Assembly: GCA_964035545.1 (NCBI GenBank) | Contig: OZ037766.1 | Coordinates: 31,672,773-31,736,772 of the forward strand | Origin: Bugula neritina | Taxonomy: Eukaryota > Animalia > Bryozoa | Direction of reading: 5' to 3' | Length of the DNA: 64,000 nt | Shown here: one piece after another, positions 1 through 63,908 of the stretch | Layout: each line of letters opens with the position of its first letter | Position numbering within the stretch: position 1 is the first letter of the stretch | The notes under the pieces: generated by a model | Seen by the model: only the letters and a program-made list of their open reading frames with translations | The model's database searches: none | What the model was told of the DNA's origin: nothing | Program-made: the position numbers and the translations under genes

Positions 1-27
1 ACTCATGCTTTATATGTGTTGTTTTAG

Positions 28-3000: not shown

Positions 3001-6000
3001 AGCAGACGCCGGGGAGGGGGGGGCTGCTTCACTCACCTGGATAATGTTTGGAACTCGCCTTCACTTGCCACTTGTTTCTTCTGCTAGTACTTTGCAGCTA
3101 GACAGCTAGGTTTCGCGTAGCCATCTGATGTTTGACTTGCTTCACTTCTGTTGACACTTTGTGTTGGTTTCTTTCAGTTATCCTTTTCTAATCCTATAAC
3201 TTTTCCTTCTACATATCTTATGTTTAGTTATTAGTTGCCTCCTCTTTGTATCCATACTTCTAGCAGGGACAACTCCTAAGTTTAGTCCAGATGTTGCTGT
3301 GTAATGATCACATAGAAGTCTTTATTGTTGAGTATATTTCAGTTTCGGTTTGTCATTGTATTGTATGTATTGTTTATGGAACTTTTAGTTTTAAGCAGAA
3401 TGTTATGGACAATATCTTTCCATTAACTTGTGGAAGTTATTCCCCTCCAACAATATGAGTACTTTGGCACTGTTAAAGTATTGCTATTTGCTATAATTAT
3501 TGCTTAGCCTAAGTTTAATCTGCCTGTATCTATTCGATTTGGGGAAGATTGCTAACATCTCGTCTGTTAAAAATTGTTAGTTCAATGAGTTTGAAAAAAT
3601 ATATGTAATTGATGATGTCTTGAAATTAGCACGATATTAATATTGAATTATTCTACAGAACTTACTCTACATTTTACTTTTCTTCGTCATTTATTTTCTA
3701 TTGGCTTGTCTAACCGTTTATATTTCACTTGATCCACCCGCTGCTTGCTCCCAAACATCTTATTTAACCTGGAATATTTTTTCTATATTTTTCTGTCTCC
3801 CCTTTGTTTCGCGTTATGTCTTATTGTTTTCATATTCACATTTGTGTATCAGGTAAAAATAGATTTTACATTCCAAAGTGTAAAGTTATTTTGCTCACTG
3901 GTTACCAATAGTGTGATAGAAGTAGACTCAGTATTGGGACTGTACTGCGTGCAGTATCCACAGTATGTACTCTCTATGTCTATGTACATGTGTCAGTGTG
4001 TGTCTATGTCTATGTTCTAGTTTGACGGCACGTCACACACACACAGTCAGACAATCCACACTGCACTGTAAACTTTTACCTGCATCATAGGTGGCCATGT
4101 ACTCAGGCCACTCTTAGGTAATTTACTAACATTCATCACCGCATACTGCTCTAGCGAATAACTGCAGTTACAATAGTACTAGCTAGACCCTCTGATGGGC
4201 ACTTCACTCCACCTAGCCCTACTTCCTCTCAACATTTGCTCTATTATTGTTGGGATTTATCCCCTCTCTCAGTATCGCTCTTGGCTACTTTACCTGAGCA
4301 TGCTGAGATAAAACTGTTGATTTTTTCTCGTCAGACATTGTATTTAGTACTGTGGGCTAGTAGGACTGCTATTGTGGCGGCTCATTAACCTTGCTTTATA
4401 AGATTGGCGTTGCACCGTGTCATGTTCTAACTATCCTGGTCACTAACAAGCCGAGCTCGCTGATCTGTGCTGCCGCTATACTCCTGGGAGTCCTGCTGTA
4501 TGGTGTAGTGTCCTGTGTAGCGTTCGAGGATAATACCAACCTTATCAGTCCAGTAGTTATACTAGCTCCTTGCATGTGAGATGATTGTAGGATACAGATA
4601 TTGTAAGTTTAGTAGTCACCTCTGTTTCATACTGGGCTAACACAAGTTGACAGGCTTCAGCAGGTGCTAGTAAATCAGCTGAACATGGAGCCAAATGTTC
4701 TCATTGTACATATTAGTTATTTGCTCAACTACCTGGCAAGTTTCACGTACTCAGTGAATTACTCAATAGACCAGCACTATCTATAGCTATATCTTTATTC
4801 TGCTTGCAAATACAGAGTACTATAGTTAAAAGTGGTAACAAAAAATAAAGAAATAAATTAAGTATAAAAAATGCTTTAATTCTACTACTGCGTCTTTGAC
4901 ATTGTTCTGTCTGCTAAGATATTAAATTAGCCAATTATTATGAAATAAACCTTCCGAATGGCAGACTGTGTTATCAGATGTATGTATAAAGACTCCGTTA
5001 TCACCTTTTTAGCTCTATATCATTATACTATATGTAATAACTGCATATACCACAACCTAGTAGATGTCTTCCCTATGTAAATATGTTGTGATTCCCCAGC
5101 ATATTTCTGTATAGAGTATACACGGCTCTTGGGAGTTGCTTCCCAACGTCACAGACACCCTGCTCCCTTCTCAAACTCACTCTGAGACCTCCTGCTCTGT
5201 ACCAGCAGATGGTAATTCTCTCTCCGTGTTGTTACCTGATGTGTTGTTACCTGATGTTCTCACCATGTTGTGACGCTGACTAGAAGTGTCTGTGTGAATG
5301 TGGCAGCAAATATTTACTCCTTAAAGGTGTTTCCTAGATGTTGCTGTGTGTGCATTCATTGCATAGCATGAGTTTGCTGTACCATCAGAATTTCCCCTCG
5401 TCTCTGCATTGTTCATCAGTTAGTAATGTGCTGGTACCAACTCCTAGCTCAGTTATGGTATCTCAACCTTTGTTTTCAGAATTTTATTTATCTGTTTCTT
5501 CATATTCTAAAGATTTATATCTAAAATATCAATTTATGTATTGACTGCCTGCCTGTCATTTTACAGAGCTGTTCCTACCTCTATTTTGATACTTAGTGTT
5601 TCATTCGTTGGTTTGCTCATAAATCAGTCTTCACCCCTCTAGTCTTTGGCTTCACACCTCTAGTTTTTGGCTTCACACCTCTAGTCTTTGGCTTGGCACC
5701 TCTAGTCTTTGGCTTCACACCTCTAGTCTTTGGCTTCACACCTCTAGTTTTTGGCTTCACACCTCCATTTTTTGGCTTCACACCTCTAGTCTTTGGCTTC
5801 ACACCTCCAGTCTTTGGCTTGGCTTTGCACTTGCTAATATTATTTGCACCTACTCCATTTCTGCAGCCCTCGTAAGCTAAGGGTGTAAAAAGTTATTAGT
5901 TTGTGAACTTCCTGTCCATTTGGTGATGCATGATGTGAGCAATATAACTGCATGAGCTTGCCGTGTTTATACTGTTGCCATGGTGACGTGATGTAGCTGT

Positions 6001-6388
6001 AACAGACTGTGTGATTGGTTAACAGGCAGCCAAGTCATGGAGGAAGGAGAGGGCCAGTGATGAGGAGAAACTCCCACTGCATGTAGCTGTTGAAGATGAC
6101 ATAGACATGCCCAGTGCCCCTGCCCCCTCCCCCTGGGAGGGACACAGTCAGCTGGCTAAGCGAGCCACCTTGGGAGACGACAGCCACTCCTTGTTGTCAG
6201 CAGACAGCGACAGCGCGCGTCCCCCCAGCTACAACTATGTAATGAAGAAGAGCGAGCCGGTCAGCTCTAAAGACTCTTCAGCCGCTTCTACGTCTGCGGC
6301 TGTTCAACCTTTGGGGTCAAGGTCGGCTTCTCGGGACGCCCTCACTCAGCCTCCTTCTCAAAAGTCGTACATAGAGACTACATGCTAG
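28..6388 (+). CDS. Pvr: Gene A: PDGF/VEGF receptor-family tyrosine kinase, 3' part (juxtamembrane, split kinase, C-tail); 5' exons lie upstream of the window
   Basis: GT-AG exons joining in frame: 28-253, 361-480, 589-741, 1076-1191, 1436-1558, 1923-2134, 2438-2546, 2685-2891, 6026-6388. Motifs: [18 protein letters not shown] (VEGFR-type JM), [34 protein letters not shown], kinase insert, [48 protein letters not shown]. Tail contains PPSY and ends YIETTC*. Symbol denotes the family, not proven orthology. Confidence 0.95.
818..1068 (+). repeat. (CTATA/CTACA)n followed by 14-bp repeat gtaagtactatgct in the kinase-insert intron of gene A
   Basis: Directly visible tandem units. Confidence 0.9.
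1607..1932 (+). repeat. ~60-bp minisatellite containing copies of the splice acceptor tatgtag|ggtccactac
   Basis: ~5.5 units of taatagactgattgctgccctttattatgtagggtccactactctactctacaaag. Related units at ~39500-39655 and ~62430-62595. Confidence 0.92.
2161..2437 (+). repeat. 17-bp minisatellite (tgtactgtgttatgtag) ending at the real acceptor
   Basis: ~16 units; the last unit supplies the AG at 2436-2437. Confidence 0.92.
2988..3044 (+). CDS. Weak candidate alternative terminal exon of gene A ([18 protein letters not shown])
   Basis: ggctaat branch-like motif, then gagttag|ACT in phase 0, giving a 96-bp intron. GC-rich island, but poor polypyrimidine tract. Confidence 0.25.
   Translation, partial: TRATQQTPGRGGLLHSPG
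4021..4071 (+). CDS. Candidate alternative terminal exon of gene A ([16 protein letters not shown])
   Basis: Acceptor tatgttctag|TTT in phase 0, matching the phase-0 donor after 2891. Ends T-A-L (class I PDZ-type). AATAAA at ~4844 and ~4852. Confidence 0.45.
   Translation, partial: FDGTSHTHSQTIHTAL
5629..5821. repeat. 21-bp minisatellite (cttcacacctctagtctttgg)
   Basis: ~9 units; explains the repetitive ORFs 5617-5802 and 5693-5875. Confidence 0.92.
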
Positions 6389-7302
6389 ACAAACCAGTTT
6401 ACCCTTGACCTTTAGCTCGTCTACTTAACCATTATAGAGTTGTCCTCTCACTGGCTTCAATCATGTAATATATTAACACAGTGTAAATATAACAGGAATT
6501 CTAACTGCTTTTATAGAATATTTTATAATACACTTCCATGTCACCCAGACGCTTGCAGAATACAGGGTGGAGTGAGCTGGTGATTATTAGTCCTGATATA
6601 CTATTGGCTTTGTTGTTAGTTATATATTTATACTTTGTTGTATCATTGTGACTTTACCTTTACCTCTGTACATATCACAATGATTACCTTTGGACTCACC
6701 ATTCTCGTGTTCTAAATTATAGGTGTTTTATATCATTATGATTATTTTTTATAAATTGGAACTGAGTTATTGTGATTAAATAGAGATAGGTTTCTTTATA
6801 TTTTAGCTTGACAGTCATTAACAGATATAACTTTGCTTCAGTTTCATGACATCAATTATCATAGGAGTAGATATTTTAACAATAATTTATATTATCAACT
6901 TTTTAATTAACTGCTCAACTATCTAGCAATACTGCATAAAATACACACTTTAACTAACAATATGATACTGTTAAGTATGCAGCCCTGTTACAAATTTGTA
7001 TTGTTGGAGTTTTCATCAACACATTATAAAGAATTTCTCCAAACTTCCTGTTTTATTAGTCTTGGTATTCTGTTACTGCACAACGCTACTTCTATCACTT
7101 ACAACATTGTAGAGGTATTGCAGTAGCACAGTCACAAAGGCAAAGCGTTTTCCTCAAACATGGCTGTTAAATTTTGTAAAATGCCGTTCACAACTTTTAA
7201 CATATTTTATTCAAAAACAAATTTTACACTAAATGGCTTTTATTTACAGAATTAAAAGTTGAGTTTGGATTCAAATTAAGCAAAAATATTTTATTTCCCA
7301 AT

Positions 7303-7573: not shown

Positions 7574-10500
7574 ATGAAAGGGCTTTATCTCTGCCCAGGT
7601 AAGTTCTGTTAATATTCTATATATATTTCCAATAAATATTATAAATATACATAATAGAAGTTATTTAGCTGCTAGCTGTTCAAATGTTTTCCTAAAGATA
7701 TAACATGTCTTGTAAAAGTTTTATTCTTCAGATGCAGGCTGAATATGAAGCTCTTCTGATGGCAGAAAAGTTTGACATTTAATTTAAAAACATTTGCTTT
7801 AATTGAAAGTAAATTCCTGAAAGAAATTATTTGTCAAGCAATAACATACTACCATTTTGTTCAACTGTGCATTTTGTTTCTGTCTACTTTGTATCTAAAC
7901 TAAATATCTAATTAGTAACTATATTGCAACTAACCACCTATATATATATATATATTACGTAAAATTCATATACCTGCGTTCAAGGCTGAGTTGAAATAAT
8001 TAGTCAAATGCTTGCATTATGCTGTATTATATTGAACTTATTGTCTCTTGGTTTGAGTTGTGATAGTCTATTGTATTTGTAGTTGTCTTCTCCATACTGG
8101 TATGTCTAGTTGTGTGTGTAAGTACACAGAGTACTATATCATTAGTACAAGTATCACCCCCTACTGGTAACTCTTACACTCCTGTACCAGTGACCAACAC
8201 AGTCAATCAATATGACATACCAGCAGGATCGAATCTCACTGTAGCTTGTGGAGAATCAGAAACTAGCCTTAGGTACCCGACTAATCAATTCGCTCAGGTA
8301 GGACCTCCTCGTAAAATCATAACTCTGCATAACTTGGGAGTTGCTCTTTCTTTCTCATTCTGTACTTATATTGTGGTGAAGAGAGATAACTCTGTATATA
8401 TTTGCGTCAATTTGTTACACTATATGCATGGAATTTTAAAGTAATAAATAACATTTCTATTTAAATATCTGATATCTGATTCCATTTATAAGATTATATA
8501 TAAAATTTAGTTAGTTATAAAAATATTATGTACTTTAACATTCCATTGGGTTTATAAAGGATAATACAATACATGAGATAACATAATATGATAGTGGAAA
8601 ACATAATGCTAGCCTCTGGTCCTTACAGTTTGATAGATTTGGGTTGGGGACCAGAGTGAGAGTCTCGACAGTAAGTACTGGAGACCAATGGACATTCGAC
8701 TCTCTCAAGTACTATGATACTGGTGTGATAGAGTGTTACAACACTGCAGATAGTAACAATGCTAGTCTCACCTCTTCTGTCTATATCTTTGTTTATGGTA
8801 TGTATACTCACAGGTCTTGATATTCTATAGTGCTTAACTGTTATGTATGGTAATAGACGGTCTATTGGTGATGTTTTATAGACCCAAATGAACCTCTCCA
8901 CGTACCGTTGAGCACATCTGGAAGTACTGGACCTATCAGTGTAACTGTGAAGAGAACTGAGTATGTACCATGCCTTCCCACTCACTCCAGCATCACTTTT
9001 ACTCTTTCTCTGCCTAGTGGCACTGTTTTACCAACTGTAAGTACTTTATTTACTTACATCCAATTGATGTGTCTTCAGAATAATAAACCTATGTTATTTC
9101 TTAAGCTACTAACTTGGTTTGGATACTTATGCTAAACATAAGTAGTACTTTAAAAAACTTGCTAGATATCAAATATAGATATGAACTAAATTAAGTGATT
9201 GGTATTTATAAAAAATGATGATGATTTGCTCTAATTTAACCTTGAACTTTCTGTTTGACAGATGGCAACTCTCAATAATACTCAAGGGTTCAAGTTGCTG
9301 CGTAGTCCCCCTCCCTTACCCCTGTACACTTGCAGTTTCACTTATGCCACCACTGGTCGCACCGACATTGTCACTGTACATGTTGCTATTGCAGGTACGT
9401 TGTGTTACTTACTCACTTGGTTACTTTAAATTCTTAAACCTGGCTCTGTCAGTATCTTGTAACATTAGATGTGAATATTTTGATGGTTATACATACATGT
9501 GCTTTCCGCCAACACCAACGGCTTGCTTAGCTTCCAACTTTCACCCTTCAGTAACTATAGATATTGAGGCGATTATGCCTGGTGCTTTGCAAACATATGG
9601 CGCACAGGCTAATTTCAATGTTTAGTCCACTAGAAACTCTGCAAATGTTAACAACTCCCGTTTTAGAACTAATGTTGACAGAAAGTGTGTAGAAGGCAGT
9701 ATAAAAAAATATAATTATGTGTTACTGCAGCGGGTCTGAGTCATAGAAACAGGTCAAAGTTCAATTGCTGTCACTTTGATGCAGTCTACCTGCTTATCTC
9801 AATCTCAGACTAATGAGTCTAGCAAAAAGCACCAGATTGAACAGCTCACACACAGAGAGGTAGAGAAAGTAGGCTGCCTAGGAAAACTGACATCGAGTTA
9901 CTAAACTTGTCGCACTCACTTACAAATATTCACTCCCTCAAAACATACCTGACTGAAATAAATTCTTTAAGTTGACTTGAAACGGAAATTGTTGAGATTA
10001 TTTTTATAAGCTGTATGATGTTAACAACAAGAAGTTGTCTTTCCTCTAACCTGTCGAAGCCAGAAATCTTGAATTATAGCCTTGATTCTGATACTCATGT
10101 ATGACGGGTTGCGTTACAGTCCCCCCTCAAATCATGGTGAGTTATGTGTACGAGTCAGAGACTGTATCAGTGATGAGTAATCCCCACACGGCCTTCTTTC
10201 AACTCTCCAAGGAGGTGGAGCTAGATTGTACTGTCACAGAAGGGTTTCCCGGCCCTCAACTGTCCTGGATATGGCAGCCATGTGACAACGCAAAACCTGA
10301 CTGCATAGTTGATGAGGCAGTGTGGCAGACCCTTCCCACCACACTCAGGTAGGTTTTGTAACGCACATTCTCATTGGATAATGCATTTGGTGGGAAAAGT
10401 GTTACTAGCCTGCAATTGTTCAGTAGGATGTAGGGGTTTTACAATAACAGAGACCTGAGGTGTTTCCTAAGGAACGCAAACACCAACTACACCTGGCAGA

Positions 10501-10761
10501 CTGGCATTAACAAAGGCAGATAACTCCTAATGACTTATTGAACTGGAGGTATACTTTGCAGTGCTTGCAGTTGTAGTCCACTGCAGCTATTATGGTAGTT
10601 AAGTACTTAAGTGAGTAAGTAAGTAACTAACTAGGTAAGTAACTAGGTAAGTAACTAGGTAAGTAAGTACGTAAATAAGTGAGTAAATAAGTGAGTAAAT
10701 AAGTGAGTAAATAAGTAAGTGAGTAAGTAAGTAAGTAAGTAAGTGAGTAAGAAAGTAAGTG

Positions 10762-10801
<40 letters not shown>

Positions 10802-11627
10802 GTAAGTAAGAAAGTAAGTAAGTGAGTAAGTAAGTAAGTAAGTAAGTAGTAAGTAAGAAAGTAAGTAATTGAGTAAGTAAGTAAGTAGTAAGTAAGAACG
10901 TAAGTAAGTGAGTAAGTAAGTGAGTAAGTAAGTAAGTAAGTAAGTGAGAGAGAGAGTAAGTAAGTGAGTAAGTAAGTGAGTAAGAAAGTAAGTAAGTAAG
11001 TGAGCAAGTAAGTAAGTAAGTAAGTAAGAAAGTAAGTAAGTGAGTAAGTAAGTGAGTAAGTAAGTGAGTAAGTAAGTAAGTAAGTAACTAGGTAAGTAAG
11101 TACGTAAATGAGTGCGTAAGTAAGTGAGTAAGTGAGTAAGTGAGTAAGTATGTAGGTAAGTAAGTAAGTAAGTGAGTAAGTAAATAAGTAAGTATGTAAG
11201 TATGTAGGTAATGCAATACTCCATACTTATCTTCTGTATTCCGTCCAATGGCATTGAAACTCTAATTAGAGTGACTCATCAGTGAGTGATTTGAATATGT
11301 CTAGTATAGTTGGCGTTAGACTCGGGATACATAACAAACCTCATTGAAGGTCTATAACGCACTCTGCAGGTAGAATTCTGAAGAGTTTAGTTATGTTTTG
11401 CTATGTTTTTAGTAAAATTATCTTGTTAAAAGTTAGAATTATGCTAATATACTAATTGTGTTGCAGCCCTTCAACTACTACTTTGGACAACTCCCCGTAC
11501 TTTACTAGCTCGAGTTCTAGTAGCCAGAGTCTCCTTATAAAAACTGGGAGGTCGGGCTGGTACCAATGTCTAGCTGAGAATGGAATTGACTCCCCTGCTG
11601 TGTACAGGATATTTACTGTAGTTTCAG
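7574..11627 (+). CDS. Gene B head: divergent VEGFR-like ectodomain, signal peptide + Ig D1-D2-D5 (no D3/D4 exons found); 3' partner uncertain
   Basis: Exons 7574-7598 (MKGLYLCP), 8083-8297, 8629-8797, 8882-9036, 9262-9394, 10120-10348, 11467-11627 join without stops. Signal peptide MKGLYLCPVVFSILVCLVVCVST. D2 YVPCLPT; D5 PPQI..CTVTEGFPGPQLSWIWQPC..SGWYQCLAEN. Exon boundaries and phases match genes C/D. Confidence 0.85.
10598..11209 (+). repeat. (GTAA/GTGA)n microsatellite
   Basis: ~600 bp of gtaagtaagtgagtaa; explains the LTYL ORFs. Confidence 0.95.
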
Positions 11628-12142: not shown

Positions 12143-12330
12143 AGTATTATAGTACAGGATATAGTGTCAGGTGTGTATTATAATAGCTACTCAATTTTCT
12201 ACAGGAATGACAACTCCTACATATTGGTTGTTATTTTAAAAGACGTGTAACTCTAAAACCAGTGATGTCATGCTAACTGTACAAGGTAATAATTTTATGG
12301 GGACTCAATTGTCCAAGTATTTACACAACT
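12143..12330 (+). pseudogene. Decayed copy of the D6 region (D6a exon deleted, D6b exon internally deleted)
   Basis: gtattatagtacag.atatagtgtcaggtgtgtattata matches 18777-18815 and is joined directly to aatagctact..acag|GAATGACAACTCCTACATATTG...GTGTAACTCTAAAACCAGTGATGTCATGCT.ACTGTACAAG|gtaat, matching 19124-19270. Confidence 0.85.
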
Positions 12331-13019
12331 TACTGTATAGCTGTTACTAATATGGCTATGCCTTAGCGATTTACTATAAAAAGTATTATATGCATATAAC
12401 TTATGGTAATTACCTTGTAGATTGTTGATGACTCCTTTTAAAGCTGGGTCTTACAGAGAAGTGACTTCAGAGAGCTGTTGGGTGTAGCAAGAGACTTCTT
12501 GTCGGTTAGGTCCACGTCAGCTTGCTCAGGATAGGTTGCTGCATTTACAAGGGTGGCTGCATCTCCATTAAGGGTAGGGCCACGTACATTAAGGGTAGGG
12601 CCACGTACATTAAGGGTAGGGCCACGTAGCTGCAGAGATTAGGATGCTTGCCTGTCAGAGCTGACTTCAAAGCGAAAGTGTAATTGCAATTATAATGAAA
12701 TTAGTAAAGGGAGACAACTTGGCTATTTTTATAATATTAATTATCTCTATAGTCTGCATACCAATAGAAAGTTAATTTATATGTGGAAGAGCTGAGGGTC
12801 AGAAGATGAGAATGTGGAATAAATCCAAAATCCACTACGACAATGTTATAGGGATACAATTATGCTGCGAAAGTAATTATGTTGTGGTTTTCAAAAAACT
12901 ATTTAACTGTTTATCAAGTGTGTCAGCTAGCTTTGAAATTTGATAGAATAAAGTGTAGTGACAGTAAAAAAAAGTTGGTAGTAATTTATTGCAGTACTTA
13001 GCTATACAACACAACAACA

Positions 13020-16000
13020 GAAATAATCACAGAGCAGAAAGTCAACTGACTAAAGATGAAGGTGCTTCATCTCTGCACTGGTAAGTTTCGTTAACTTATA
13101 GAAATAATATGAATAAATGGAAGGATAAAGCTCAAATATACATGTTTTAGTTAGTTTAGTAGTTTGGTAAGCTATATTGACTGAGCTTTGCTTGCTGATG
13201 ACTAAAGTTACAGAGGGTTTCCTACTAACATATACTGTTTCCCCAACACTTGTTATACTGAGATTTTTCTTCTGAATTTGTCTAAAAGTTGTTATCATTT
13301 TAGCACCAACTGAGTGGAACAACTTCTGCTTCAATTTATGGCGCTTACTTTAACTGTAACTGCAACTGTATAGCCGTACTTGCAACCATAACCATACTGT
13401 TTTAACCACTGAACTGAAACTATAAGGGTTATAGTATAATGGTTTTAACCAATTTTAGGTAAAAAGGGCACAGGTAATAATCATAATGGCGCAAATGAAA
13501 AAGTAGGTAAAATGGTATACTGATGTTAAATTTTTCCAAACCCCAAATTCAAATGCCCCACTTAAAACCCAAACTCTTCATCTAAGTCCTACTATTGAAA
13601 AAGTACCATTTTTACTTATTTTGCCATTTTTACTGGACACAGTATTAACCATTGCAAGATAATGGTGGCCAGAGCATAACCAATAAGTGTAACATAAAAG
13701 CAACTTAGACTGAAATTTCATAATTAATGTCTTTATAATGCTAAACGAAGTAGCCATATACTTGCAATTAGTCCATTTATTAGATACATGTGTGACTTGA
13801 TCAATAGTAATAGTGGGAGGAGTGAGGGAGGAAGTCAAGTTGGGTGACCACAAGTTGGTTTCAAGATATTATATTATAGCCACCTTTTCAAATAGCCCAG
13901 TCTGCTTAATGGGCATGCGTTGAGGGGCAGTGGCAGTGCCAAATCTTCTACCTAATTGCTGGTTTTGTTGTGATTAACTCGACCAACAACAGGAATTGAA
14001 GTGCCAAGTGCTTAAACATGCTTTTAGTTTGACCATGTGTTAGAAACTGTTACTAAAATTTTTTTTAACCAAAGAATGTCATTTAAAGATGAGTTGAAGC
14101 ATAAAGCAGAGCTCTGGTTGTGTGGGTAAACTACAATGACTCATCTGCTACTTTAGGAGTCTGATTTGAGCCATCTTCAAGCATTTTAAATTTAAAGCAA
14201 GCGCAACCAGTGAAATTTAGTAAATACTATAATTTGTAACACTAGCAAATAGCGAGTAGCACCTAGCAATCAACAATTAGCAATTGGCAATTGGCAACTG
14301 GCAATTAACAGTTAGCTAGCAAATCGAACCGCTTTCCTAGACATATTCATCTTTATTCAGAGCAAAACACTAGAAATCATTTGTGTTGCTGTTACCCAGT
14401 TACCTAGCTGTGTATTTTAATATAACTAATAATAATATAATTATCCAGTATCGCCTATTACAAGAGAAAGTTCTAGTTAGAGCAAAGGTGGTGCAAAAAG
14501 TGACCAGTGTCAAACAGGTCCTATTATGCTGCCAGCCATTCGGTTTCTTGAATTAGGCTTGTTTATCTACGTTTTCTTATATTCATTTTAAAGCAAAGAA
14601 AATGCAGAGTTGAAAAATAAAAACAGTGCGTGATGCCAAGACCCTATGGCCTAATGCAAACATCACATAACTTCTTGTCATATGACTGGCTACAAAGGTT
14701 TATGGAAATACTATTGGTTTACATCCAAAACTTATATATATATAGTGGGTTTAGAAATGCTACAATGTACTTCATTTAAAGCTGCACTCAATAACTCATA
14801 ACAATCACCCAACTTACTTATCAATTAATCAATCTATTAATAGATATTTGAAAAGCTATAATTTCAACAAAATTCAGAAACTGTCATTAAATCCTTTGCC
14901 AAAGTTATTCAAACAACCAGACTTGACGGTTGAATAACCTAAGTGTGCTGGAAATAATATTTATTCTGAGTTTAGAGGTGCTGTTATAAACACTTCACAT
15001 GATGTTAGGAATACCATTCTCTAAAATAACACCATAAATCACACCTGGCTAGCTGTTGGTACTAACTGTATATAGCTATAGGTAAATGTCTATAAAATGT
15101 CTAAATAAATTGCTTGAACTAAATGAAGTACCAGCTAAGCTTTCTATAGAAAGGTATGCTAAATACTTTAGCTATTTGAAGCTTTTACTTACAGTAATTT
15201 AACTTCACTAAATAAAATACTAACTATGAGAATTTTACAACATAAATAGAAGTTTTTCAATCATATTTGATGCATTTCAGCTGGTTTTTGAGAAATAGGC
15301 TGGGAAATTGTCGTACACTACGATTAGTGATAATTGCTTCACATTAATTGAGATGCTTTTCTATTGGCTACTCTCTATATAAGAAATTGTAATAATTACT
15401 ACTCTTATGTTGATTGGTTGTAGTTCATGTAATCCTCACTCTGATTGGCTGTCACGAAGCTGTGAGAATAGTGAGGATAAAACTACCCTCCATGAAGTCA
15501 CAATCTACTAATATAACCACATCCTGGGATCTACCAGTTGGGTCTACAATAACAGTGGAGTGTGAGAAATCTTCACAGACCTTGACCTACGAGACTCACC
15601 GGTGGGCTGAGGTAGCAACCAATCACACCATCTAACTTCATGCAAATTTGATTTTAAGCCCTTTTGTTAATTGGCAAGCTCTAACTCACACGGGTTCTTT
15701 CATATTGGATAACGAATGTGTAATATACATTTTTATCAACACAGCTCTTTGGAATATAAATAAAAGAAAATAGTGCATTCAGTTTTTTTTGTTATGGCTC
15801 AGTTTTTCTTGACTTAAAAATGTTGACTAATAAAAAACTAGCTTCTTTGTGATGAACAAAAAAAGCAAAATATAGATAGTAAATGAAGTTGCCCCCTTTT
15901 GAATGATGTTAATTCAGGACTAAACCCCCAAAGCTATTGTAGCTCATAAAAAGGCAGTATTTTTGCAAATAAAGGAATTATTCTATAAGCAGCAATAGTA

Positions 16001-18767
16001 GTTGGGGATAAAGGATAATTTTAGTTTAGGGGTTTTAAGTTTAGGGAAAGGTAGGTGTAGTAATGAGGAAACAAAGAAAAGCCAGCATTCTAAATTCTAG
16101 ACAATGAATATTAAGAGAAATGAAGCTCTCAATTTAAGAAAATTATAAACCTACACCCTAAAACAAAGTTGATTAAAGAAATTGCTAAACTTGGGCATCT
16201 TAAATTTGTTCATTACTGTATCTGAAACGGGTTTTTTATCTGTTGGCTAATAGAATCCCAGTATTTAAAGCAACATTTCTACTTTTAAACAACACAATCC
16301 TAGATGCTATTCCTACAGTAAGCAATAATTAAACCTATAATATCTTATTACACAATTATTATTAAATCTTTGTTTCCTACATTTTAGAGTGAAAGGTTTA
16401 GTGGTGGTCGGTTTGTGCATAACTCATCTGCTAATGTGTGGACACTGAGTGATTTGCAATCAAGTGACACAGGATGGCTAGTGTGCTTCAACAATGGCAG
16501 CATTGGCAGTGGCAGCAATAATGGAAACACTACAGTTGAACTTGCTGACGTGGACAGCACCCAAAATTCATCTCTGTATATCTTTGTAAATAACCGTAAG
16601 TATATTTCAGAGTCATTAGCGTCTATTTTACTCCTGGTTGCCAGTTGATTGCAAAGTTGAGCACTAACAATTTTTTCTTATTTCATTATCAAAATGATTT
16701 CTGTATTCCTAACTTAATCGGTTATGCTGATGAAATTTGTTTAGTAGATTTTGCCAAACCTTTACAAAAACTAAGTGGCTAGATGAACTTGTGCTCTGTC
16801 TAGGCATCACTAAAATTTAAATTGAAATCTCAAACCAGTAGAAATACAACAGAGAGCTGATTAATGATGGCTATCTTTGATGTTTTGCAGCTGACTCATT
16901 AGATATGTTTGTCCCTCTTGAGTACTTGGTATACTACAAGTTGTTTTTTGGTGCATATTTTCCTTGCCTACCTACTAACTCGAGTACTGAAGTTACACTC
17001 ATACTTGGACCAGACCTAACTAATCAACTGACTGAGCTAGTCAAGGTGAAACATTTACCATTATCCACATGTTTTTTGTTCTGGCTACATGTTCCTTGAC
17101 TCCCTCAACTCCTAAAGTGATTTGTTTATGCCCAACATATTATGTATGAAGGCTTGGCCCCAGGCTCGTGAAAATCACACGAAACTCATGTGACGATTTT
17201 CGTGAGTTATCCTCTCGTTATGACCAGCCACACACTCGTTGAATGAAACACATAATAGATAGTCCGTGAATGAGTCTTGCACAAGATACCAACAGCAGAA
17301 AATAGCCAAATAGAGAAACGTGGTAGAAATGAAATAAGCACTGTTGCTAAAATTCTATTGACCAATCAAATGGTGCTTATCATTGATTGTGATTTTTTGT
17401 TCATCGCCTTCGTTGTGTACACCCAATGAAGATGATTCCGTTTGAATTTCCTCAAATTTTCTCATACGATTGTGTTTTCGCGTCAAATAGACAATTTCAT
17501 GTGATTCTCCCGAGTATGTGGTCAGGCCTTGACTGTAACTTTGACTGTAACTTTAAAATAGATTACTAGTAATCATTATTTAAAAATATCTAAATTTATT
17601 TCAATTTGGTACTCTATTGTGTTATTGTAATCAATTGATAATAGATTGCATCACTAATAGTAGCTATAACAGCTATCATAATCCAGTATATAAAAAATGA
17701 GTATTTCTCTTACAGTCTGACCTGTATAACATACAAGTTTTAATACACAGGGTGTAGACTACATCTTTGACAATCAAGAAGGGGTAAAGCTGCTTCAAAT
17801 ACCTTCCGATATATCATTTTACACGTGTCAGTATATAAATGGAGGGGATACAGTGTCAGAAAACTACTTCCTCTATATCGTAGATTTAGGTAGGTTTTTG
17901 AAAAGCTTTCATGTGGTAATTGTTTATTGAACACAATGTTTAGCAAAAATTAACATTTTTCTAATTTAGAAATGACATTTCACATTATTTAAAGTAATTT
18001 TCATGAATAATTTTAATGTTACTTCAACTCAAGTGTGGTTTGCTACCACCATGTTACATATTTGTTAGCTGCACTACCACACCCAATACTAAGTCCCGCA
18101 ACTCAACGAACTCACTATCTGGTTGGTGAAGACCTCACTATAGTGTGTTACATCCTGTTTGATGACATTGAATCTGTTGTGTACAAATACCCAGCATCCA
18201 ACTGCTCCTATAATGTCATTGATGATCTCGGCTGTGATAAGGTAGGAAAGGAATGTGTCTAAAATTGTTACTAAACAATTATCCTATTTCAAATATATAA
18301 ATAGTTCATCAGATATCAATTTATCATTCACTAAATAGTCAATTGAGATTTCAATTCTTTTTTATAATAAAAAATAGGAAGTTTACACCTTTTTAAACGT
18401 GACTGCGATTGTTTTTAGCTAGTGCATTTACACTTGTTTTAACAATTTGTCATTTTTCATTAGATAGTTCAACATGCATAAATGTAGTTATGCCTAAAAC
18501 TTTTTAGCCACGGAAATGCTTTAAACACATGATAGTACACATTTACTCTATATTTGTCAAGTTGAAGACCAAAGGGCGAATCACAATGACGCCATTGACT
18601 AAAGTCTCTCCAACCAATGTGACGTCTAGCATCATAATCCGAGACCTCCAACTCAATGACAGTGGGCTGTATACGTGTTCATATAAGATATATCAAGATA
18701 CAGAGTACAGAAGGCAAGACTCTCTGGAAATACATGTAGTAGGTAGGCTTGCAGGGAGAAATTGCCT
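13020..18767 (+). repeat. Segmental duplication of the gene C 5' region (paralogous to ~25427-31290)
   Basis: Exons and introns align from gaaataatcacagagcagaaa (13020 / ~25427) to gcttgcaggg.gaaattgcc (~18767 / ~31290). Paired near-identical ORFs in the track (15414/28382, 16415/29297, 16905/29784, 18035/30558, 18529/31053). Introns differ by indels. Confidence 0.95.
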
Positions 18768-20845
18768 TCATCTTGTGTATTATAGTACAGTATATAGTGT
18801 CAGGTGTGTATTATAGTACTGTATTAATAATATTATTATTATTATTCCAGCTCTACCTCCCAGCTCTAAAGGTATAGGATTTGCAACCCAAACAGTTCAG
18901 ACTGCATCTCAGTTAGTTGTTGGTGATGACTTCTACATGCACTGTCATGTGGCACGTTTTGAGTGTTTAGCTAATCAAGTGGCCATAACAGGAAGTGGTG
19001 GTGTTCGGTATACTCAAGGTCATGCTGATGCATTGTGGGCAGAGTAAGTGCTGTTTCCTGTAGATTGTGTGTTATAGAGATTTTTGACAATATTGAAAAT
19101 TTCTAAGAGTTGCGTAAGTTTTAAATAGCTACTTAATTTTTCACAGGAATGACAACTCCTACATATTGAGTGTTACTCTGACTGGCATTACGAGAAACAT
19201 GACAGGAAATCGGTATTTGTGTGGGTGTAACTCTAAAACCAGTGATGTCATGCTGACTGTACAAGGTAATCATTCTCCTGGCACCCTATTAGCTAAGTAT
19301 TTACAAAATTTTCTCAACTTTAACCTAACCTCGTGTTATTGTCTTGTTTTGGTGGCAAATTGTTACATTTCAGGTCGCATACTATAAAAAGCCTTACAAG
19401 ACTGTTAAGATGTATTACAATTTTATGTTCAGCAAAAGACAGTCTTTTTGGTGCTGTGTTATACTAAAGCTATCTTTTCAAATGCTAAAATCTTGCAACC
19501 AATAAAGTTGGTATGTGTGAATTGTAAAGTTGTTTTTAAAATAAAAATAAAAGGGTTAAATAGGTATTGCTGATGTCTGTTTATTCTTGAGGTGTTTGTA
19601 TCTGATCCATTAATGTGCTAGTTAAAACACCTCCATCAGCAGGCAAGATCAGCATTTAAAGTCTACTAACTTGTTGCGTCTAACTTTTTATAGCAAATAT
19701 ATATAAATCTATTTTACCTTCTTGTAGAGTTCGTGAGGCCTTTCTGGGCACTAAAATCTGATGCAATGATAAATGTAACAGTCGGAGATACGGAAACTTT
19801 CACCTGTCAAGCAGTTGGACAGCCTTTGCCGGAGGTCACGTGGTATAAAGATAATAAGAGGATACTGAATGACAGTAATACAGTGGTACTTGGTAGAAAT
19901 AATCATAGGTAAGTACTACAGTGTTACTTGGTAGAAATAATCATAGGTAAGTATTGCAGTAGTACTTAGTAAAAATGATCGTAGGTAAGTATTACAGTGT
20001 CACTCGGTAAAAATAGTCATAGGTAAGTAAAAGTAGGTGTATTTACACGTAAGTACAGCAGTACGTGCTAACCTGAACCTAGTTTTTGCTTTCCCTTGCT
20101 TACGCAATAAGATAACTATATGCTATATTTAGCCAACAAGACATTAGGAAACTGAAAATCAAAACACAAAGGTGATTAAGCTAGGCTCATCTTTTTGACT
20201 TAGATTTACATCAACATTTTATATTCTCCATACTGTTACAGTCTGACCATCATAGTTTGTCCAAGTTGTCTGCCCTTTCTTTTGCTCTACTCACTCCACA
20301 CTGTTACAGTCTGACCATCTACAAGGCTACACTTGAAGACTCGGGTTCTTATAGCTGTGTTGGTACGACAAGGCGCAGTCTCCCTATTTATAATAACTTT
20401 ACTCTCACTGTCGCTGGTTAGTATATAACATACTTTGACCTATATATTAATATGAACATTGACCTATATATTGATATTTACACTGACCTATATATTAGTA
20501 TCATGTACACTGACCTATATATTGATATGTACACTGACCTATATATCGATATGTATATTGACCTATATATCACTTATGTACATTGACCTTTATTCTTTAA
20601 TAACTATGTTTAAAGCTACTACTGTATTCCTCAATGCAGTGACTTAAACATCATGTATATACTTGTCTGTAAATTATTTAGCCAAGACAGCCAAGTTAAA
20701 GGATGTGGGGATAGCTATGATTGCAGTGTTGGTTCCGGCAGTGATATTCATCGTCATAGCAACCATTGTTTGTGTCATTCACCGAAGAAGGCGGACAAGG
20801 GAGGAAGTTCCACTGGAAAGACTGAGTACTAATCAAAATCTATAA
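13056..20845 (+). CDS. Gene B': chimeric kinase-less VEGFR-like membrane protein (SP-D1-D2-D3-D6-D7-TM-short tail), putative decoy receptor
   Basis: Exons 13056-13080, 15424-15611, 16388-16595, 16891-17045, 17751-17889, 18069-18241, 18562-18742, 18851-19043, 19147-19265, 19728-19908, 20310-20416, 20682-20845 join in frame. TM VGIAMIAVLVPAVIFIVIATIVCVI, then HRRRRTREEVPLERLSTNQNL*. No kinase exons before gene C. AATAAA at ~21177. Confidence 0.82.
17150..17529. mobile_element. 380-bp MITE, PIF/Harbinger-like (3-bp TSD)
   Basis: Imperfect TIRs: AGGCTTGGCCCCAGGCTCGTGAAAATCACACGAAA vs reverse complement of the right end AGGCCTGACCACATACTCGGGAGAATCACATGAAA. Flanked by TGA..TGA. The paralogous site in gene C (~30010-30022, cgtaTAActg) is empty. 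Confidence 0.8.
19881..20030 (+). repeat. 38-bp repeat x4 spanning the D7a donor (aatcatag|gtaagt)
   Basis: cagtggtacttggtagaaataatcataggtaagtacta units at 19881, 19919, 19957 and ~19995. Confidence 0.88.
20437..20590. repeat. ~24-bp degenerate minisatellite (gacctatatattgatatgtacact)
   Basis: ~6 units in the intron before the B' TM exon. Confidence 0.8.
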
Positions 20846-22931
20846 TACGTTTGCTGGTCACAATATTATAGTTATATTTTATGTAATATCTTTTCTATAC
20901 CTAGAATCTATTGCTGGGAAATAGAGTTTTAATTTATATAAACTATATATTGGTTCAAAATCACTAGTTTCGTAATCTAGTATTAATCGATATTTTTTTA
21001 AATCAACTTATAATTTTATTTTGGTAGTTTATTTATCTGTAAAACTATTTTTCCATCACAGTTGATCACAACATTTATTTTAATCTTTATATTTAAAAAT
21101 AATTACCAATAATTTATTGAAGTTGGCAAAGTTTTTCTATTGATTATGTTTTGCTTATGTTTGATGGATTTCCAAGAATAAAAAACAAGATAACAAGTTC
21201 AGATGCTGCCAGAAAAGTCATCACAATACTCCAAGCTTGCGAGAGTGCTCAGCACACTGCTTTCTGCATTGGAGCATTGTATGATTTGTAGCCATGGGGA
21301 GGTAACTCAGCAACCTATTGGCTGTTGCTAGAAAACAGCCCGTTTGTTCAAATGGTGCAGAAAAGTGAAGCCTAATATGCGTTGCTAGTTGGTGGTTGCG
21401 TTGCTAGTTGGTGGTTGTGTTGCTAGTTGGTGGTTTCTAGACCTGTATATATAAATCTTTTCTGTGGTATATTTACTAGTTGCCCCCTCTTTATTTTTGT
21501 AGTTTTAGGAAAGATAATTGATGTGAATTTCAAATTTTGCATGATTTTACAGCTAGGTGAGCACTAATATATTGATGGTATTATAGTAGTTTGCTATAGA
21601 ATTAGTTGTTTAGATGCTATAATAGTATTTTGTCAACTAGAAGTTATGCCCCTTTAATAATTTACTAATAAAAGAATGGTGTTAGTACGCAAGTGTTTTA
21701 CCGACATCTGCAAAATCCGTATCAAATTCAACAAAACTTAATAGCATTTTGTAAATTCAATTTTGGTGCTTGCAGTTGGAAGAGAAACCACGCTCCCCTC
21801 TCTCACCAAGAAATCAGGCAAGCTAGTATAATAGCACTGAGCATTGCTAACTTAATTTTCAGCTGTTACATTAAAAACAAAGGGGTTTCTATAATTGCTG
21901 TAATTTGATCTGCCTAAAATAGAATACATTATATTTCATTTTAGTGTGCCTGTCTTTGTTCATGTTTGGAATAATGCCTGATTTGTTTATTGAACTTTTT
22001 AGTCAATGACTTTAGAAGTTGCATAATGATTGCTATTCTGAAATTGACATGATGCTTTCATGGGTTGAATAAATTTATTTATTTAAGTATAAACTACTGG
22101 TAGGGATCATAGTTAATTAATTTACAGAATTTATTGCTGAGTAGGTACTCAGTTCTGTCTTCGCTATGAATCTTTTTTAGATATTTTTATGTCAATAGTT
22201 TCAGGCACTAATTGTGTACACCCTTCACTGGTTTCAATTAAAAACTCCTTTTGTACTTTTAGCTCTTCTATGTCTTTTCATTTCATTTTTTTGTTCATAT
22301 ACTATTTCTGTGAGATCAGCAGTCAATCTCTAAGTCACTTTACAGCTGCCCTGGATAACTATTTCTTACCATTATGGATAAAGAATAAAATAATTTGGTT
22401 TGAAAGTTATTCTGACCAGATGATGACGAGAAGTAGTTATATTTTATCAGCTTGCAGACCAAAAGGTATTTCCTGAAAATATGCTGAGCTGTGCTAAGAA
22501 ATTCTGACATGTGAAAACTGGGTTTATAGAGGCCTGCTAGATCTATGCTTCCATTAACTGAGGACTCATGTTAAAAATGATAAATAATAAACACGTTAAT
22601 TTATTGTTGCAATATTTTAAAAGCTATATATTTGAAAAACTAGAAGTTATCCCCACAATGTTACCTAACTTTAGCTTGTACCAAAATAGCATACATTATG
22701 TTACTGTGCTATTACTAACTAGCTTTAGTAGCACAACTTCCTGTGTTTGGAGCCATTTCCAAAGGAAACACACCAACACTACCAGCAACTTCTGGCATCG
22801 GCCCTGTTGTCCCATCTCTCTTCACTTTCTTCTTATGAGTCTTCCGCAGGCGGTAGGGGGTGAGATCGTGACTGAAGCTGATAAAAATAGAGTGACACTG
22901 AGTGCTATGACCTGCTGGTACAAGCTATACT

Positions 22932-23935
22932 AACACAAGTTGGCAGGCTTCAGCAGGTGCTAGTAAATCAGCTGAACATAAAGCCAAATGTTCTCATTGC
23001 ACATTAATTATTCGCTCAGCCACCTGGCAAGTTTCCAATTCAGTATAACAATATTCAACAAACTGATGCGTGAACAGTTTTTTTAATTAAAGATGTCTTT
23101 GCACTTGCAAATGCTAATTACTATAATTTCAATGCTATTTATTAGTATTTTATTAAATGATTATTTTTTTAAATAAAGCAATGACTTTAGTTAATCAGCT
23201 TTTGTTTAAATTGTCTAATTTTGTGTCCCTGGAACTTTTTTCTCTGTTTCAAAGTAGTAGGCCTAAAACCTCCTAATAACAGATTGCATTGTTATCAGAT
23301 GTATGTAGAAAGACTACCGTTATCACCTGTTTTTAGCTCTATATCATTATACTATATGTAATAACTGCATATACCACAACCTAGTAGTTGTCTTTTCTAT
23401 GTAAATATGTTATGATTTCCCAGCATATATATGTATAGAGTATACACGGCTCTTGGGAGTTGCTTCCCAACGTCACAGACACCCTGCTTCCTTTTTAAAC
23501 TCATTCTGGGACATCAAGGTTGATACCAACAAGGAATTATCTTCTCTCTCTTTTGTTCCCTGCTATACTTACTTATCTCTGTTATACTTACTTATTTTAA
23601 GCAATATCATCTGTCATCATGCAGATGTTTTTGCTGAAATGTAGTATTCACTGATTGCAATATTGCATGATGTTTACTGGCCAATATGTTGCATATAGGT
23701 GATTATCCTTTTCCACATGACACAAAACCCAACGGTGTATAGCTGTCTCTTATAGAGTTTGGGTCATGCGACATAACTTATTCGATGTTGCTGCATTCGT
23801 CCCACTGGTCACCAGTTAGTAATGTACTGGTACCAACTCTTGGTTTAGTTATGATATCTCAACCTTCTTCTTTAGGATTTTATTTACCTGTTTCCTCATA
23901 TTCTAAGAATTTCTATATATAATATCAAGCTATGT
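22932..23935 (+). repeat. Diverged copy of non-coding sequence from gene A last intron / alternative 3'UTR (~4639-5540)
   Basis: Collinear shared blocks: aacacaagttg.caggcttcagcaggtgctagtaaatcagctgaacat (4639/22932); gttatcagatgtatgta..tagctctatatcattatactatatgtaataactgcatataccacaacctagtag (4970/23291); gagtatacacggctcttgggagttgcttcccaacgtcacagacaccctgct; cagttagtaatgt.ctggtaccaactc. Confidence 0.9.
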
Positions 23936-25462
23936 AGCTTTGCTGTGTAACCTTAGTATTACATTATCACAAATGTGTTTACAGCATGCTTGTCTCATGA
24001 CTCTGTACCAATTTATTCCGACATGTTTTGGCTGCCTGTCATTGAATTTCATCATTCAAAAAATTATTTCTAATTTTAATTTGCAACTGTTTAGTGTCTT
24101 AGTTTGGTGAGTTTTTACTGTGTTGCAAAAACTTCAAATTTGTTTTGTTCCAATAATACCTTCAATACGAGCTCCCAATCTATTTATATCTGCATTTTTT
24201 TACTGCTTCACCACTACCTCTATGCTAACAATGTATCAGCAACTGATGCTTAACACTCATATATTTCTAGACACATTTACACTGTAACTGGAGAAATTTG
24301 CTATAATATTGCTGTTGCTGCCATGATGATGATATACTCCATATGTATGATCCATTGGCAAGCAGCAGTAGAAAAGAAAGAATATAAATGTAGAGTGGGA
24401 AACTCTCACTGCTTGTATCAATGTTTGTCTTCCTTTACAATATTATTTATAAACATATATTATAGCATACTATCAACACAAGGGCTTTGTATGAGTGCAA
24501 ACTAGGGTTCTGCTACTTAATACACAGCAGGTACTAAAACCTTATGCTCTACCATCATATTATTGTTACTGTAACTTTTTATTTGTTAGCTTTCGGAGCA
24601 GATGTTTTGGGGAAATGCCAGCTGATGTATTCCCTAAGAGTTAGAATTAGAGTAGCACATTACATACACTGGTGACTGTTTACTTATGATCTGTTAAACG
24701 TGTGTACCACCACCTTAATGCTTTGGCTTTGATGTTATGTTTTTAGAATAGTCTTTCATAATCATCAATTTGGGAAAAGTAAGCACAGTTTTGCAGTGCA
24801 GTGCAGGAGAGAGCAATTATTTCTTGTTGTCATTATTATCTTCTTTATTATTCTTTATTCAGTGTTAGCAAACCAAAAATACTCAGCAAACTTTTTACCT
24901 GTCTAGCCAAGTAACTGCTCACCTCTTATTACGCAATAACAAAGCTTCTCAATAATTAACTACTTTTAATTCAATTTACAACCAATAAAAATCTCATTAT
25001 TGGTAACATGCAGTTTTCGATGTTGGATGCATTTTTCATACAATTGTTGATTATTGTTTTGAATACTTTTAAAGTGTAGCATTGTCCTACAAATCTAATT
25101 CTAAATTGCTTCATTTATTGACATTAGAGAATAGTGATAGTCCGAATAGAAGACCAACAGTAGCTGCGCGTGCACGACTTGATTTCGTAAGTACAGTCAA
25201 CCTCTAAACCTCATCAACATTACAGTCAAAGTCTCAAACTCAACACCTGACACTACCAGCATAGCATTGACTTTAGCATGTGATTCAGTCAGTCCCCAGC
25301 ATGTTTTCCATTTTACAACGCAGCTGATAATAGCAACGTACACATAGACACAAGTTTTGTCACCACTTCTCTTTACCAAATCTAGTGCACGTCTGAATGA
25401 TAAAACTTCATGTACTAACATCTGGGGAAATAATCACAGAGCAGAAATTCAACTCACTAAAG

Positions 25463-28400
25463 ATGAAGGTGCTTTATCTCTGCACTGGTAAGTTCTGTTA
25501 ACTTATAGAAATAATATGAATAAATGGAAGGATAAAGCTCAAATATACATGTTTTAGTTCGTTTAGTGGTTTGGTAAGCTACATTGACTGAGCTTTGCTT
25601 GCTGATGACTAAAGTTACAGAGGGTTCCCACTAACATATACTGTTTCCCCAACACTTGTTATACTGAGATTTTTCTTCTGAGTTTGTCTAAAAGTTGTTT
25701 TCATTTTATCGCCAACTGAGTGGAACAACTTCTGCTTCAATTTATGGCGCTTACTTTTACTGTAACTGCAACTGTATAGCTGTACTTGCAACCATAACCA
25801 TACTGTTTTAACCACTGAACTGAAACTATAAGGATTATAGTTCAATGGTTTTAACCGATTTTAGATAAAAATGGCACAGGTAATAATGGCACAAATGGAT
25901 AAGTAGGTAATAATGGCATACTGATGTTAAATTTTTCCAAACTCCAAATTCAGCCGTCCCACTTGAAATTTAAACTTTTCATCCGAACACTAATATTGAA
26001 AAGTGCTAATTTCAATTACTTTGCCACTTGTGTCATTTTTACCATTGCAAGATAATGGTCCCCAAAGTATAACCAATAAGTGTACATAAAAGCAACTTAA
26101 ACTGAAATTTCATAATTAATGCCTTTATAATGCTTAACCATATACTTGCAATAAGTCCATTTATTAGATGCATGTGTGACTTGGTTTGTAGTAATAGTGG
26201 GAGGAGTGAGGGAGGGAGTCCAGTTGGGTGACCACAAGTTGGTTTCAAAATATATTAGCCACATTTTCAAATAGCCCAGCCTTCACGTACCACATGGGCA
26301 TGCCTTGAGTGGCAGTGGCAGATGTGAAATCGCCAAATACTCTACCTAATTGCTGGTTTTGTTGTGATTAATTCGACCAACAACAGGAGTTGAAGTGTAA
26401 AGTGTTCAAACATGCTTTTAGTTTGACTGTGTGCTAAAAACTTTTATTGGATTTTTTTAACCAATGAATGTCATTTAAAGATGAGTTAAAGCATAAATCA
26501 GAGCTTTGGTTGTGTGGGGAAACTACAATGACTCATTTGTTACTTTAGGAGACAAGTTCAATCATAGCTAGCTTTATTATGAACATATTTGGTTAGTTTT
26601 AATAAAATATGGTTGAATATTTTCTTGGTCTCTTGTAGTTTCTCCCCCCCCCCCCCCCCAAGAGTCAATATTTAAATAAAGTTAACAACTATCTCGGCTG
26701 AATGGTCGGAAAATATATAAGGCTTTTTATTAAATTTATCTAAAATTTGTAGCCTAATGTTTCATGTTTTTGTAAATTAAAACCGAACACATAATAGCAG
26801 TTAGAAAAGCTTGTAATGCTATTTCTAAGTAGCTATTGAGTCAAGTATATAGTATTTAGTAAAACAAACTGGATTACTTCCGCATTGATACATAATGAAA
26901 ACATGCTTTCGAACAGATTTGAAGCAATGTCTTTTAATTACTTGAGTAAATGCGTACATTGTAGTTGAAGTATCACAGGAAATCTATTGTAGGTATATAA
27001 TTTATCCAGCTAAATTTAAAATAAATATGTGCTGAGAAACGGGTGTTGCATGCTTCAAGTCATCTTCAAGCATTTTAAATTCAAACGAGTCACAAACAGT
27101 GAAATTTAGTAAATATTTTAATTTATAGCACTAGCAAATGGCACCTAGCAATTGGCAAATAGCAATTAGTAACTAAAAGCTAGCAACTGGCAATTAGCAA
27201 TTGGCAACTGGCAACTAGCAGCTAGCAACTAGCAATTAACTAACAACTAGCAACTTGCAACTAGCAATTGGCAATTGGCAAACCGAAAAGCTTTCCTATA
27301 CACAAGTATCTTTACTCACTGCAAAAAACTAGAGATCATTTGTGTTGCTGTTACCCAGTTACCTAGCTGTGTATTTTAATATAACTAATGATAATATAAT
27401 TATCCAGTATTGCCTGTTACAAGAGGAAGTTTTAGCTAGAGTTAGAGCAAAGGTGGTGCAAAAAGTGACCAGTGTCAAACAGGTTCTATTATGCTGCCAG
27501 CCATTCGGTTTCTTGAATTAGGCTTGTTTATCTACGTTTTCTTATATTCATTTTAAAGCAAAGAAAATGCAGAGTTGAAAAATAAAAAACAGTGCGTGAT
27601 GCCAAGACCCTATGGCCTAATGCAAACATCACATAACTTCTTGTCATATGACTGGCTACAAAGGTTTATGGAAATACTATTGGTTTACATCCAAAACTTA
27701 TATATATCGGGTTTAGAAATGCTACAATGTACTTTATTTAAAGCTGCACTCAATACCTCATAACAATCACCCAACTTACTTATCAATTAATCAATCTATT
27801 AATAAATATTTGAAAAGCTATAATATCAACAAAATTCAGAAACTGTCATTAAGTCTTTGCCAAAGTTATTTAAACAACCAGACTTGATGGGTTGAATAAC
27901 CTAAGTGTGCTGGAATAATATTTATTGTTTCAAATTATTCTGAGTTTAGAGGTACTGTTATAAACACTTCACATGATGTTAGGAATACCATTCTCTAAGA
28001 TAACAACATAAAATACACCTGGCTGTTGGTACAAACTGTATATAGCTATAGGCACAAGTCTATAAAATGTCTAAATAAATTGCTTGAACTAAATGAAGTA
28101 CCAGCTAAGCTTTCTATAGACAAGTATGCTAAATACTTCAGCTATTTGAAGCTTTTACTTACAGTAATTTAACTTCACTTAATAAAATATTAACTATGAG
28201 AATTTTACAACATAAATAGAAGTTTTTCAATCATATTTTATGCATTTCAACTGGTTTTTGAGAAATAGGCTGGGAAATTGTCGTACACTACGATTAGTGA
28301 TAATTGCTTCCCATTAAGTGAGATGCTTTTCTATTAGCTACTCTCTATAAGAAATTGTATTAATTACTACTCTTATGTTGATTGGTTGTAGTTTATGTAA

Positions 28401-37400: not shown

Positions 37401-37571
37401 TTTAAAAGATCTGTGATACAAACATCAGGTACCTAATATTGTTGTAAACATGAAAGACACGAGAGAACTATTTAATTTATTTTCCCGTTAAGAAAATTTA
37501 CACAGTCTAGTTCTGTGCGTGTGTGTGTGCGTGCGTGTGTGTGTGTGCGTGCGTGTGTGTGTGTGTGCGTG

Positions 37572-37603
<32 letters not shown>

Positions 37604-46425: not shown

Positions 46426-63908
<17,483 letters not shown>

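Follow-up and report, generated by a model that had tools for sequence, protein, structure and literature searches.

In the genome of the bryozoan Bugula neritina (tzBugNeri2.1, 216,009,554 bases), a tandem cluster of VEGFR/PVR-like receptor genes, named A, B, B', C and D from first to last, lies in and just upstream of a window of 64,000 nucleotides (31672773-31736772), the whole stretch of DNA analysed here, with unlabelled positions below being those of the window. The gene of interest is B', in which a head nearly identical to that of the neighbouring receptor C is joined to a short stalk and transmembrane (TM) segment of the type found in gene A, with no kinase behind it. Judging from its sequence B' may well be an expressed, membrane-anchored sink for PVF ligand made at a tandem-duplication junction, a reading that is given about even weight here.

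Is a receptor gene without a kinase simply a damaged one? All 12 exons of B' (13056-20845) are open in one frame of 610 amino acids (aa) with AG/GT at every intron, and so the preliminary description of it as an intact chimeric kinase-less receptor holds. Its protein layout is a signal peptide, immunoglobulin (Ig) domains D1-D3, then D6-D7, the TM segment and a 21-residue tail lacking tyrosine (domain numbering is from exon and cysteine pattern, most single exons being without a Pfam match; exon 7 is a V-set match). Homology searches were made exon by exon: against 50% representatives exon 10 found generic multi-Ig proteins only, the search for homologues of exon 8 gave no matches and neither did a metagenome scan. 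With five Ig domains, a stop after the TM segment and no kinase, B' is not itself a VEGFR/PVR kinase as its parents are, since the gene models of A, C and D have seven Ig-like domains, a TM segment and a split kinase closest to that of VEGFR. What it shares with decoy receptors is a predicted ligand-binding region homologous to that of a signalling receptor, as D1-D3, including the D2-D3 earlier singled out, are 95% identical to those of C, and the absence of a signalling domain. Exon 12 reads through the site from which A, C and D are spliced on to the kinase. As had been pointed out, the donor used in C and D is missing there, and so is the counterpart of that in A. Splicing from this exon to a kinase was considered and is ruled out: there is no conserved donor, an RNA contig passes the stop and the nearest kinase exons are those of C, 15 kb away. 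A duplicated acceptor is present about 68 bases upstream of exon 11 (20231-20310), and its use would lead to a stop before the TM segment and a secreted form.

The head is, as proposed, a recent duplicate of C exons 1-7, with the end of the block now placed at 18766, and a third copy of the block is found nowhere in the genome. Its exons differ from those of C at 41 of 1069 bases and in 18 residues (3.8% coding), and its introns are 7.4% different with 58 gap events; the indels and the miniature inverted-repeat transposable element (MITE) that had been reported for these introns are real, the latter being a high-copy insert in intron 4 with imperfect 47-bp terminal inverted repeats. The ratio of non-synonymous to synonymous rates (dN/dS), a comparison that had been called for, is 0.26 for the head versus C (P=3e-5), and for D6-D7 versus A it is 0.41 (P=0.004). 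A head free of indels has, under neutrality at the intronic indel rate, a probability of 5e-4. Together these values point to constraint on the coding sequence of B'. At its 5' end the C-type block starts 36 nucleotides before the ATG, without C's promoter (a promoter block, 25179-25427, is common to C and gene B and absent from B'), and so co-expression of B' and C is not to be assumed, nor is it the default in this haplotype.

Head and tail meet in a 108-bp hybrid intron with a phase-1 donor (18742), as had been described. Its acceptor (18851) is phase 1 as well, and the boundaries of its C-type, filler and A-type parts are now mapped. The A-type part consists of a minisatellite unit (from 18774) and the acceptor, and the 7-nt filler partly mirrors the bases next in C. 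A junction at homologous sequence is ruled out, the breakpoint being non-homologous, with filler. Intronic tandem repeats made from exon ends and splice sites occur in several genes (L019 6361-7100; window 1606-1932, 19874-20029, 35328-35580 and 37004-37140), and the B' junction adjoins one unit of such a repeat.

Where, then, did the tail come from? It had been called much more divergent, which is correct relative to C (35% protein identity) and incorrect in general, for it was copied from the D6-D7-TM part of gene A, to which its protein identity is 86%. An orphan or ancient tail is thereby ruled out, and the idea of exon shuffling inside the cluster is borne out, with a C-type head, an A-type tail and both donors there. 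In DNA the identity to A is uneven, at 93% in D6, 81% in the first half of D7, 94% in its second half and 76% in the TM segment, which suggests an older duplicate patched by gene conversion. The homotypic motif of VEGFR D7 has an arginine in the E-F loop; C and D have it and B' has lysine instead. The motif of B' had earlier been set beside that of C and D. The stretch is the same in the full-length kinase receptor A, and so the lysine is inherited rather than a decoy adaptation and is uninformative on decoy design. Searches of the PDB gave no alignment of these exons to VEGFR D7.

Evidence of expression comes from two runs, X8 and X12, presumed to be RNA, of other colonies about 5% diverged. 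They provide spliced contigs over exons 2-7 and the joints 8-9, 9-10 and 10-11, loose ends connect exon 11 to B'-type exon 12 and a contig covering 20754-20866 passes the stop. For the D3-D6 splice (exon 7-8) the evidence is the geometry of contigs. In X8 the head contig has its last piece ending at 18740, a cut shifted to the left as at its other joints, and exactly 30 letters remain; the X8 D6 contig starts exactly at 18849. When five cases were simulated with k=31, both features appeared only with the exon 7-8 splice together with a second exon feeding exon 8, and this is good, but indirect, support for the splice. As to the samples themselves, X4, X8 and X12 carry the same organism label, and one of them belongs to the same study. 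Their divergence from the reference at this locus is about 5% for exons and 8% for introns, and they would appear to be cryptic lineages or very divergent haplotypes.

What might B' do? In VEGFR1 and VEGFR2, D2-D3 bind ligand and soluble forms are decoys (PMC7765180), and contacts of D4, D5 and D7 are needed for VEGFR activation (PMC7765180; PMC4829425). We infer that B' is translated, that it most likely binds the PVF ligand or ligands that C binds, and that by analogy it would inhibit, dampening signalling by ligand sequestration or through ligand-bridged complexes with one kinase only. It probably does not act via matched D4-D7 contacts with C: as D4-D5 are absent and D7 and the TM segment are A-type, such stalk contacts are unlikely, and with them the part of the original proposal in which B' was a dominant-negative partner matched to C. 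That B' is dedicated to C is further countered by the absence of C's promoter, and gene B offers a second, A-type head in frame with the same tail.

Gene B also figures in the likely history. Its A-type exons are mostly 93-99% identical to those of A (one is 85%), it ends in phase 1 in frame with the exon at 18851, with the B' tail it makes an open frame of 616 aa, and spliced into B' exon 2 it would give 965 aa, also in frame. Beyond it come a repeat, a broken D6 remnant and further repeats; 3' of the B' stop are patches of A's last intron and then C's promoter. B' would have formed at the junction of a tandem segmental duplication within the PVR/VEGFR cluster. In a first step, the stretch between A intron 1 and C intron 1 would have been duplicated to give gene B, with the promoter and exon 1 of C and the body of A, and the colinear homologies 4637-5540/22930-23936 and 7290-7660/25179-25530 fit this. 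Gene B would then have lost D3-D4 and all kinase exons, and it would now end in its TM exon. A second duplication, its junction observed and its place in the order conjectural, would have linked intron 7 of C with the intron that precedes D6 in B, by non-homologous end joining. With both ends phase 1, the product is in frame: a membrane protein in which D1-D3 of C sit on a short stalk of A type, with neither kinase nor tyrosine. Deletions and insertions of repeats would later have cost the first copy most of its tail and removed the promoter of C. Behind the D6 remnant, the start of the intron looks closer to A than to the B' tail, possibly due to conversion or to another order of events.

A number of points weigh against B' being a selected ligand sink. 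The exon 7-8 joint itself, in contrast to the contig geometry, is not among the 15 joints listed (16 further ones, including the real exon 6-7 joint, are unlisted), the X12 exon 7 contig goes on with 130 letters of different sequence (presumably exon 8 of C), and at the positions displayed the letters of the X8 head agree with those of the C-type contig of X12. The RNA is from other colonies, with the divergence given above, and in this haplotype C's promoter is missing at B'. It is also possible that the two heads were functional alleles of C that had drifted apart ahead of the duplication, since other colonies differ from B' more than C does, in which case dN/dS and the lack of frameshifts would be uninformative on selection on B'. 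Might B' then be nearly neutral, a side effect of a young duplication that is in frame by luck through Ig phase-1 introns, weakly transcribed and with no selected role? This is a possibility to be taken seriously, if short of likely. A repeat replaces the promoter, the 3.8% by which the head differs from C is less than the roughly 5% versus the other colonies' contigs and may be old allelic divergence, and neighbouring pieces of the same duplication, such as the D6 remnant, are decaying. The depth of the head relative to the tail, about 1-1.4 times in DNA run X4 compared with 2 times in run X1, hints at presence/absence variation, though weakly as depth is not copy number. However, a colony with about 5% divergence probably has the junction transcript, the full depth in X1 means that both haplotypes carry B', and the tail exons are intact while their remnant has decayed. 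Even the assembly may be questioned, since the heads differ about as much as colonies do and, among the X1 contigs listed, none spans the junction, but that two C haplotypes were artefactually joined in tandem is scarcely credible. With 88% of the sampled words, X1 is the likely source run and is not independent of the assembly; in it the contigs that belong to B' alone, those that belong to C alone and those of the unique tail are all at depth 114-140 and the gene A variant contig is at about 100, the HiFi coverage of the assembly being 132-fold (PMC11480708). The halved coverage that had been named as the sign of a haplotype mis-join is not seen, a mis-join is unlikely with both heads at full, equal depth, and this depth fits two real head copies on both haplotypes. 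A second allele of the tail does not appear in X1, homology is absent at the junction, which has a filler, and the window contains no N.

Other readings accept an expressed product and differ as to its role. B' may bind ligand to positive or other effect, as in presentation or concentration of PVF, endocytosis, adhesion or recognition, in the way later found for FGFRL1, which was first seen as a decoy and turned out to be multifunctional (PMC12026108, PMC3820611). The lack of D4-D5, which makes matched dominant-negative pairing unlikely, is in keeping with this, but with a 21-residue tail lacking tyrosine, and with the kinase-less VEGFR forms described so far being decoys, it is quite unlikely. 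Still less probable is that the functional kinase-less gene is B, comprising A-type D1-D2-D5 and the same tail, with the C-type head carried along inside an intron of B or serving as an alternative cassette. B's exons are open and its product with the tail is an intact protein, it retains the C-type promoter and the X8 geometry requires a second exon upstream of D6. However, that exon may be gene A's own D5, a broken D6 exon follows B in this haplotype and would bring in a stop if spliced, and the X8 C-type head contig appears to run straight to D6. On the unlikely side too, though not so far towards it, is a two-headed decoy module under selection, in which one kinase-less D6-D7-TM tail would be expressed with an A-type or a C-type head, matched to the parents by gene conversion and common to B. 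neritina lineages.

The genome has three VEGFR/PVR kinases, A, C and D, all at this cluster (from a genome search with C's first kinase exon, the best matches of which are VEGFR2 and VEGFR1). Among the Ig proteins to which the D3-D4 exon of gene A aligns are VEGFR1 and VEGFR2, over their D3-D4 stretch; A's ectodomain and TM exons sit upstream of the window, reaching up to 9.1 kb out, and its exon 22 is intact. PDGF/VEGF-domain loci also number three, together within 27 kb on contig C7 (10883294-10910425), and so mirror the count of receptor kinases. Exon 2 of gene D (47216-47467) is 90% identical to exon 2 of C and B', compared with 35-50% in protein for its other head exons, and seems to be a gene-conversion patch; C and D show comparable conversion-like patches in their exons for D6, D7 and the kinase, and exon 1 of gene D was not found. 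The D2 exons of gene B (8882-9394) have 18 non-synonymous and 7 synonymous codon changes from A, the other B exons being near-identical, and altered ligand specificity is possible. The remnant D6 exon (12205-12285) retains AG/GT ends and, spliced after the last exon of gene B, would give an early stop and a secreted D1-D2-D5 protein. The patches of A's last intron are non-coding, 83-91% identical and in unalignable surroundings, and may have a regulatory role or be exons of a different transcript. An inverted-arm element (37683-38342; arms 228-bp, 98%) lies in the kinase-insert intron of C, a tandem duplicate of about 530 bp (45686-46756) lies upstream of gene D, and upstream of gene A is a single-exon ankyrin-repeat open reading frame of 725 aa (L021 6248-8422) with closest matches 32-37% identical.

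Table. Positions of B', of the segments from which it was assembled and of its neighbours
Feature	Position	Strand	Remarks
Gene A, 3' (kinase) half	1..6390	+	tail source
Gene B	7574..11627	+	C-type promoter and exon 1, then A-type D1, D2, D5 exons
Gene B exons	7574-7598, 8083-8297, 8629-8797, 8882-9036, 9262-9394, 10120-10348, 11467-11627	+	open
Degenerate A-type D6 remnant	12144..12334	+	first D6 exon deleted; second with internal deletion
Dispersed repeat, 40 or more copies	12842..13020		ends at 5' breakpoint of C-type block, where C has its promoter
Duplicated C-type block	13020..18766	+	copy of 25427-31290 at 87-93% (self-BLAST)
B' exon 1	13056..13080	+	start of signal peptide, C-type; 1/25 nt differs from C
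B' exons 2-7	15424..18742	+	remainder of signal peptide and Ig D1-D3, 95% protein identity to C
B' exons 2-7, limits	15424-15611, 16388-16595, 16891-17045, 17751-17889, 18069-18241, 18562-18742	+	
MITE-like high-copy element	17149..17530 (about)		intron 4 of B', absent from C
Hybrid intron, 108-bp	18743..18850	+	C-type to 18766, 7-nt filler 18767-18773, A-type from 18774
B' exons 8-11	18851..20416 (18851-19043, 19147-19265, 19728-19908, 20310-20416)	+	Ig D6-D7, A-type
B' exon 12	20682..20845	+	TM helix, 21-residue tail, stop
Patches homologous to last intron of gene A (4637-5540)	22930..23936	+	mark end of older A duplicate
Gene C	25463..41659	+	7-Ig VEGFR/PVR-like kinase, full length, 25 exons, 1398 aa; head donor

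How does B' compare with known systems? Soluble VEGFR1/2/3 (sFlt1 and kin) likewise have VEGFR ligand-binding domains without a kinase, and act as decoys (PMC7765180), but they are secreted splice forms of the receptor gene, whereas B' is a separate chimeric gene, membrane-anchored, without D4-D5 and mixed from two paralogues. FGFRL1 (FGFR5) is, like B', a separate gene with an Ig ectodomain, a TM segment, a short tail and no kinase. Unlike B', which is PVR/VEGFR-type, young and chimeric, it is ancient and of the FGFR family; in place of the FGFR-type three-Ig ectodomain, B' has both halves from VEGFR-like neighbours. In origin, though not in family, the likeness is to CHRFAM7A, also a young partial duplicate fused to exons of another gene in an open frame, which negatively regulates its parent receptor (PMC8998457, PMC7949125). 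CHRFAM7A, however, combines an ion-channel subunit with an unrelated gene, whereas B' joins two paralogues and retains the predicted ligand-binding part. Constructs of the PvrDN type lack the kinase and have the whole ectodomain. That PVR signalling can be blocked in vivo by a dominant-negative receptor is known from engineered Drosophila PvrDN (PMC10945756). Unlike B', that receptor is artificial and overexpressed. Non-signalling paralogues beside signalling receptors include TRAIL DcR1/DcR2 and IL-1R2, of other families and not head/stalk chimeras. By analogy, B' would work like the soluble VEGFRs and FGFRL1 and would have arisen like CHRFAM7A, while being a member of none of these families. 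A limited literature search found no report of a gene-encoded, membrane-anchored, kinase-less PVR/VEGFR decoy in an invertebrate, and nothing on PDGFRL and the D7 salt bridge.

Kinase-less decoys of vertebrate VEGFRs are known as splice forms, and here is a candidate encoded by a gene of its own. No new principle is involved, for the mechanism is known and is seen here at the level of a lineage. With both donors, both breakpoints and the decaying leftovers still readable, the birth of such a gene is datable and selection on it can be tested across the cryptic species of B. neritina, and with three receptors and three ligand loci, their pairing is directly testable.

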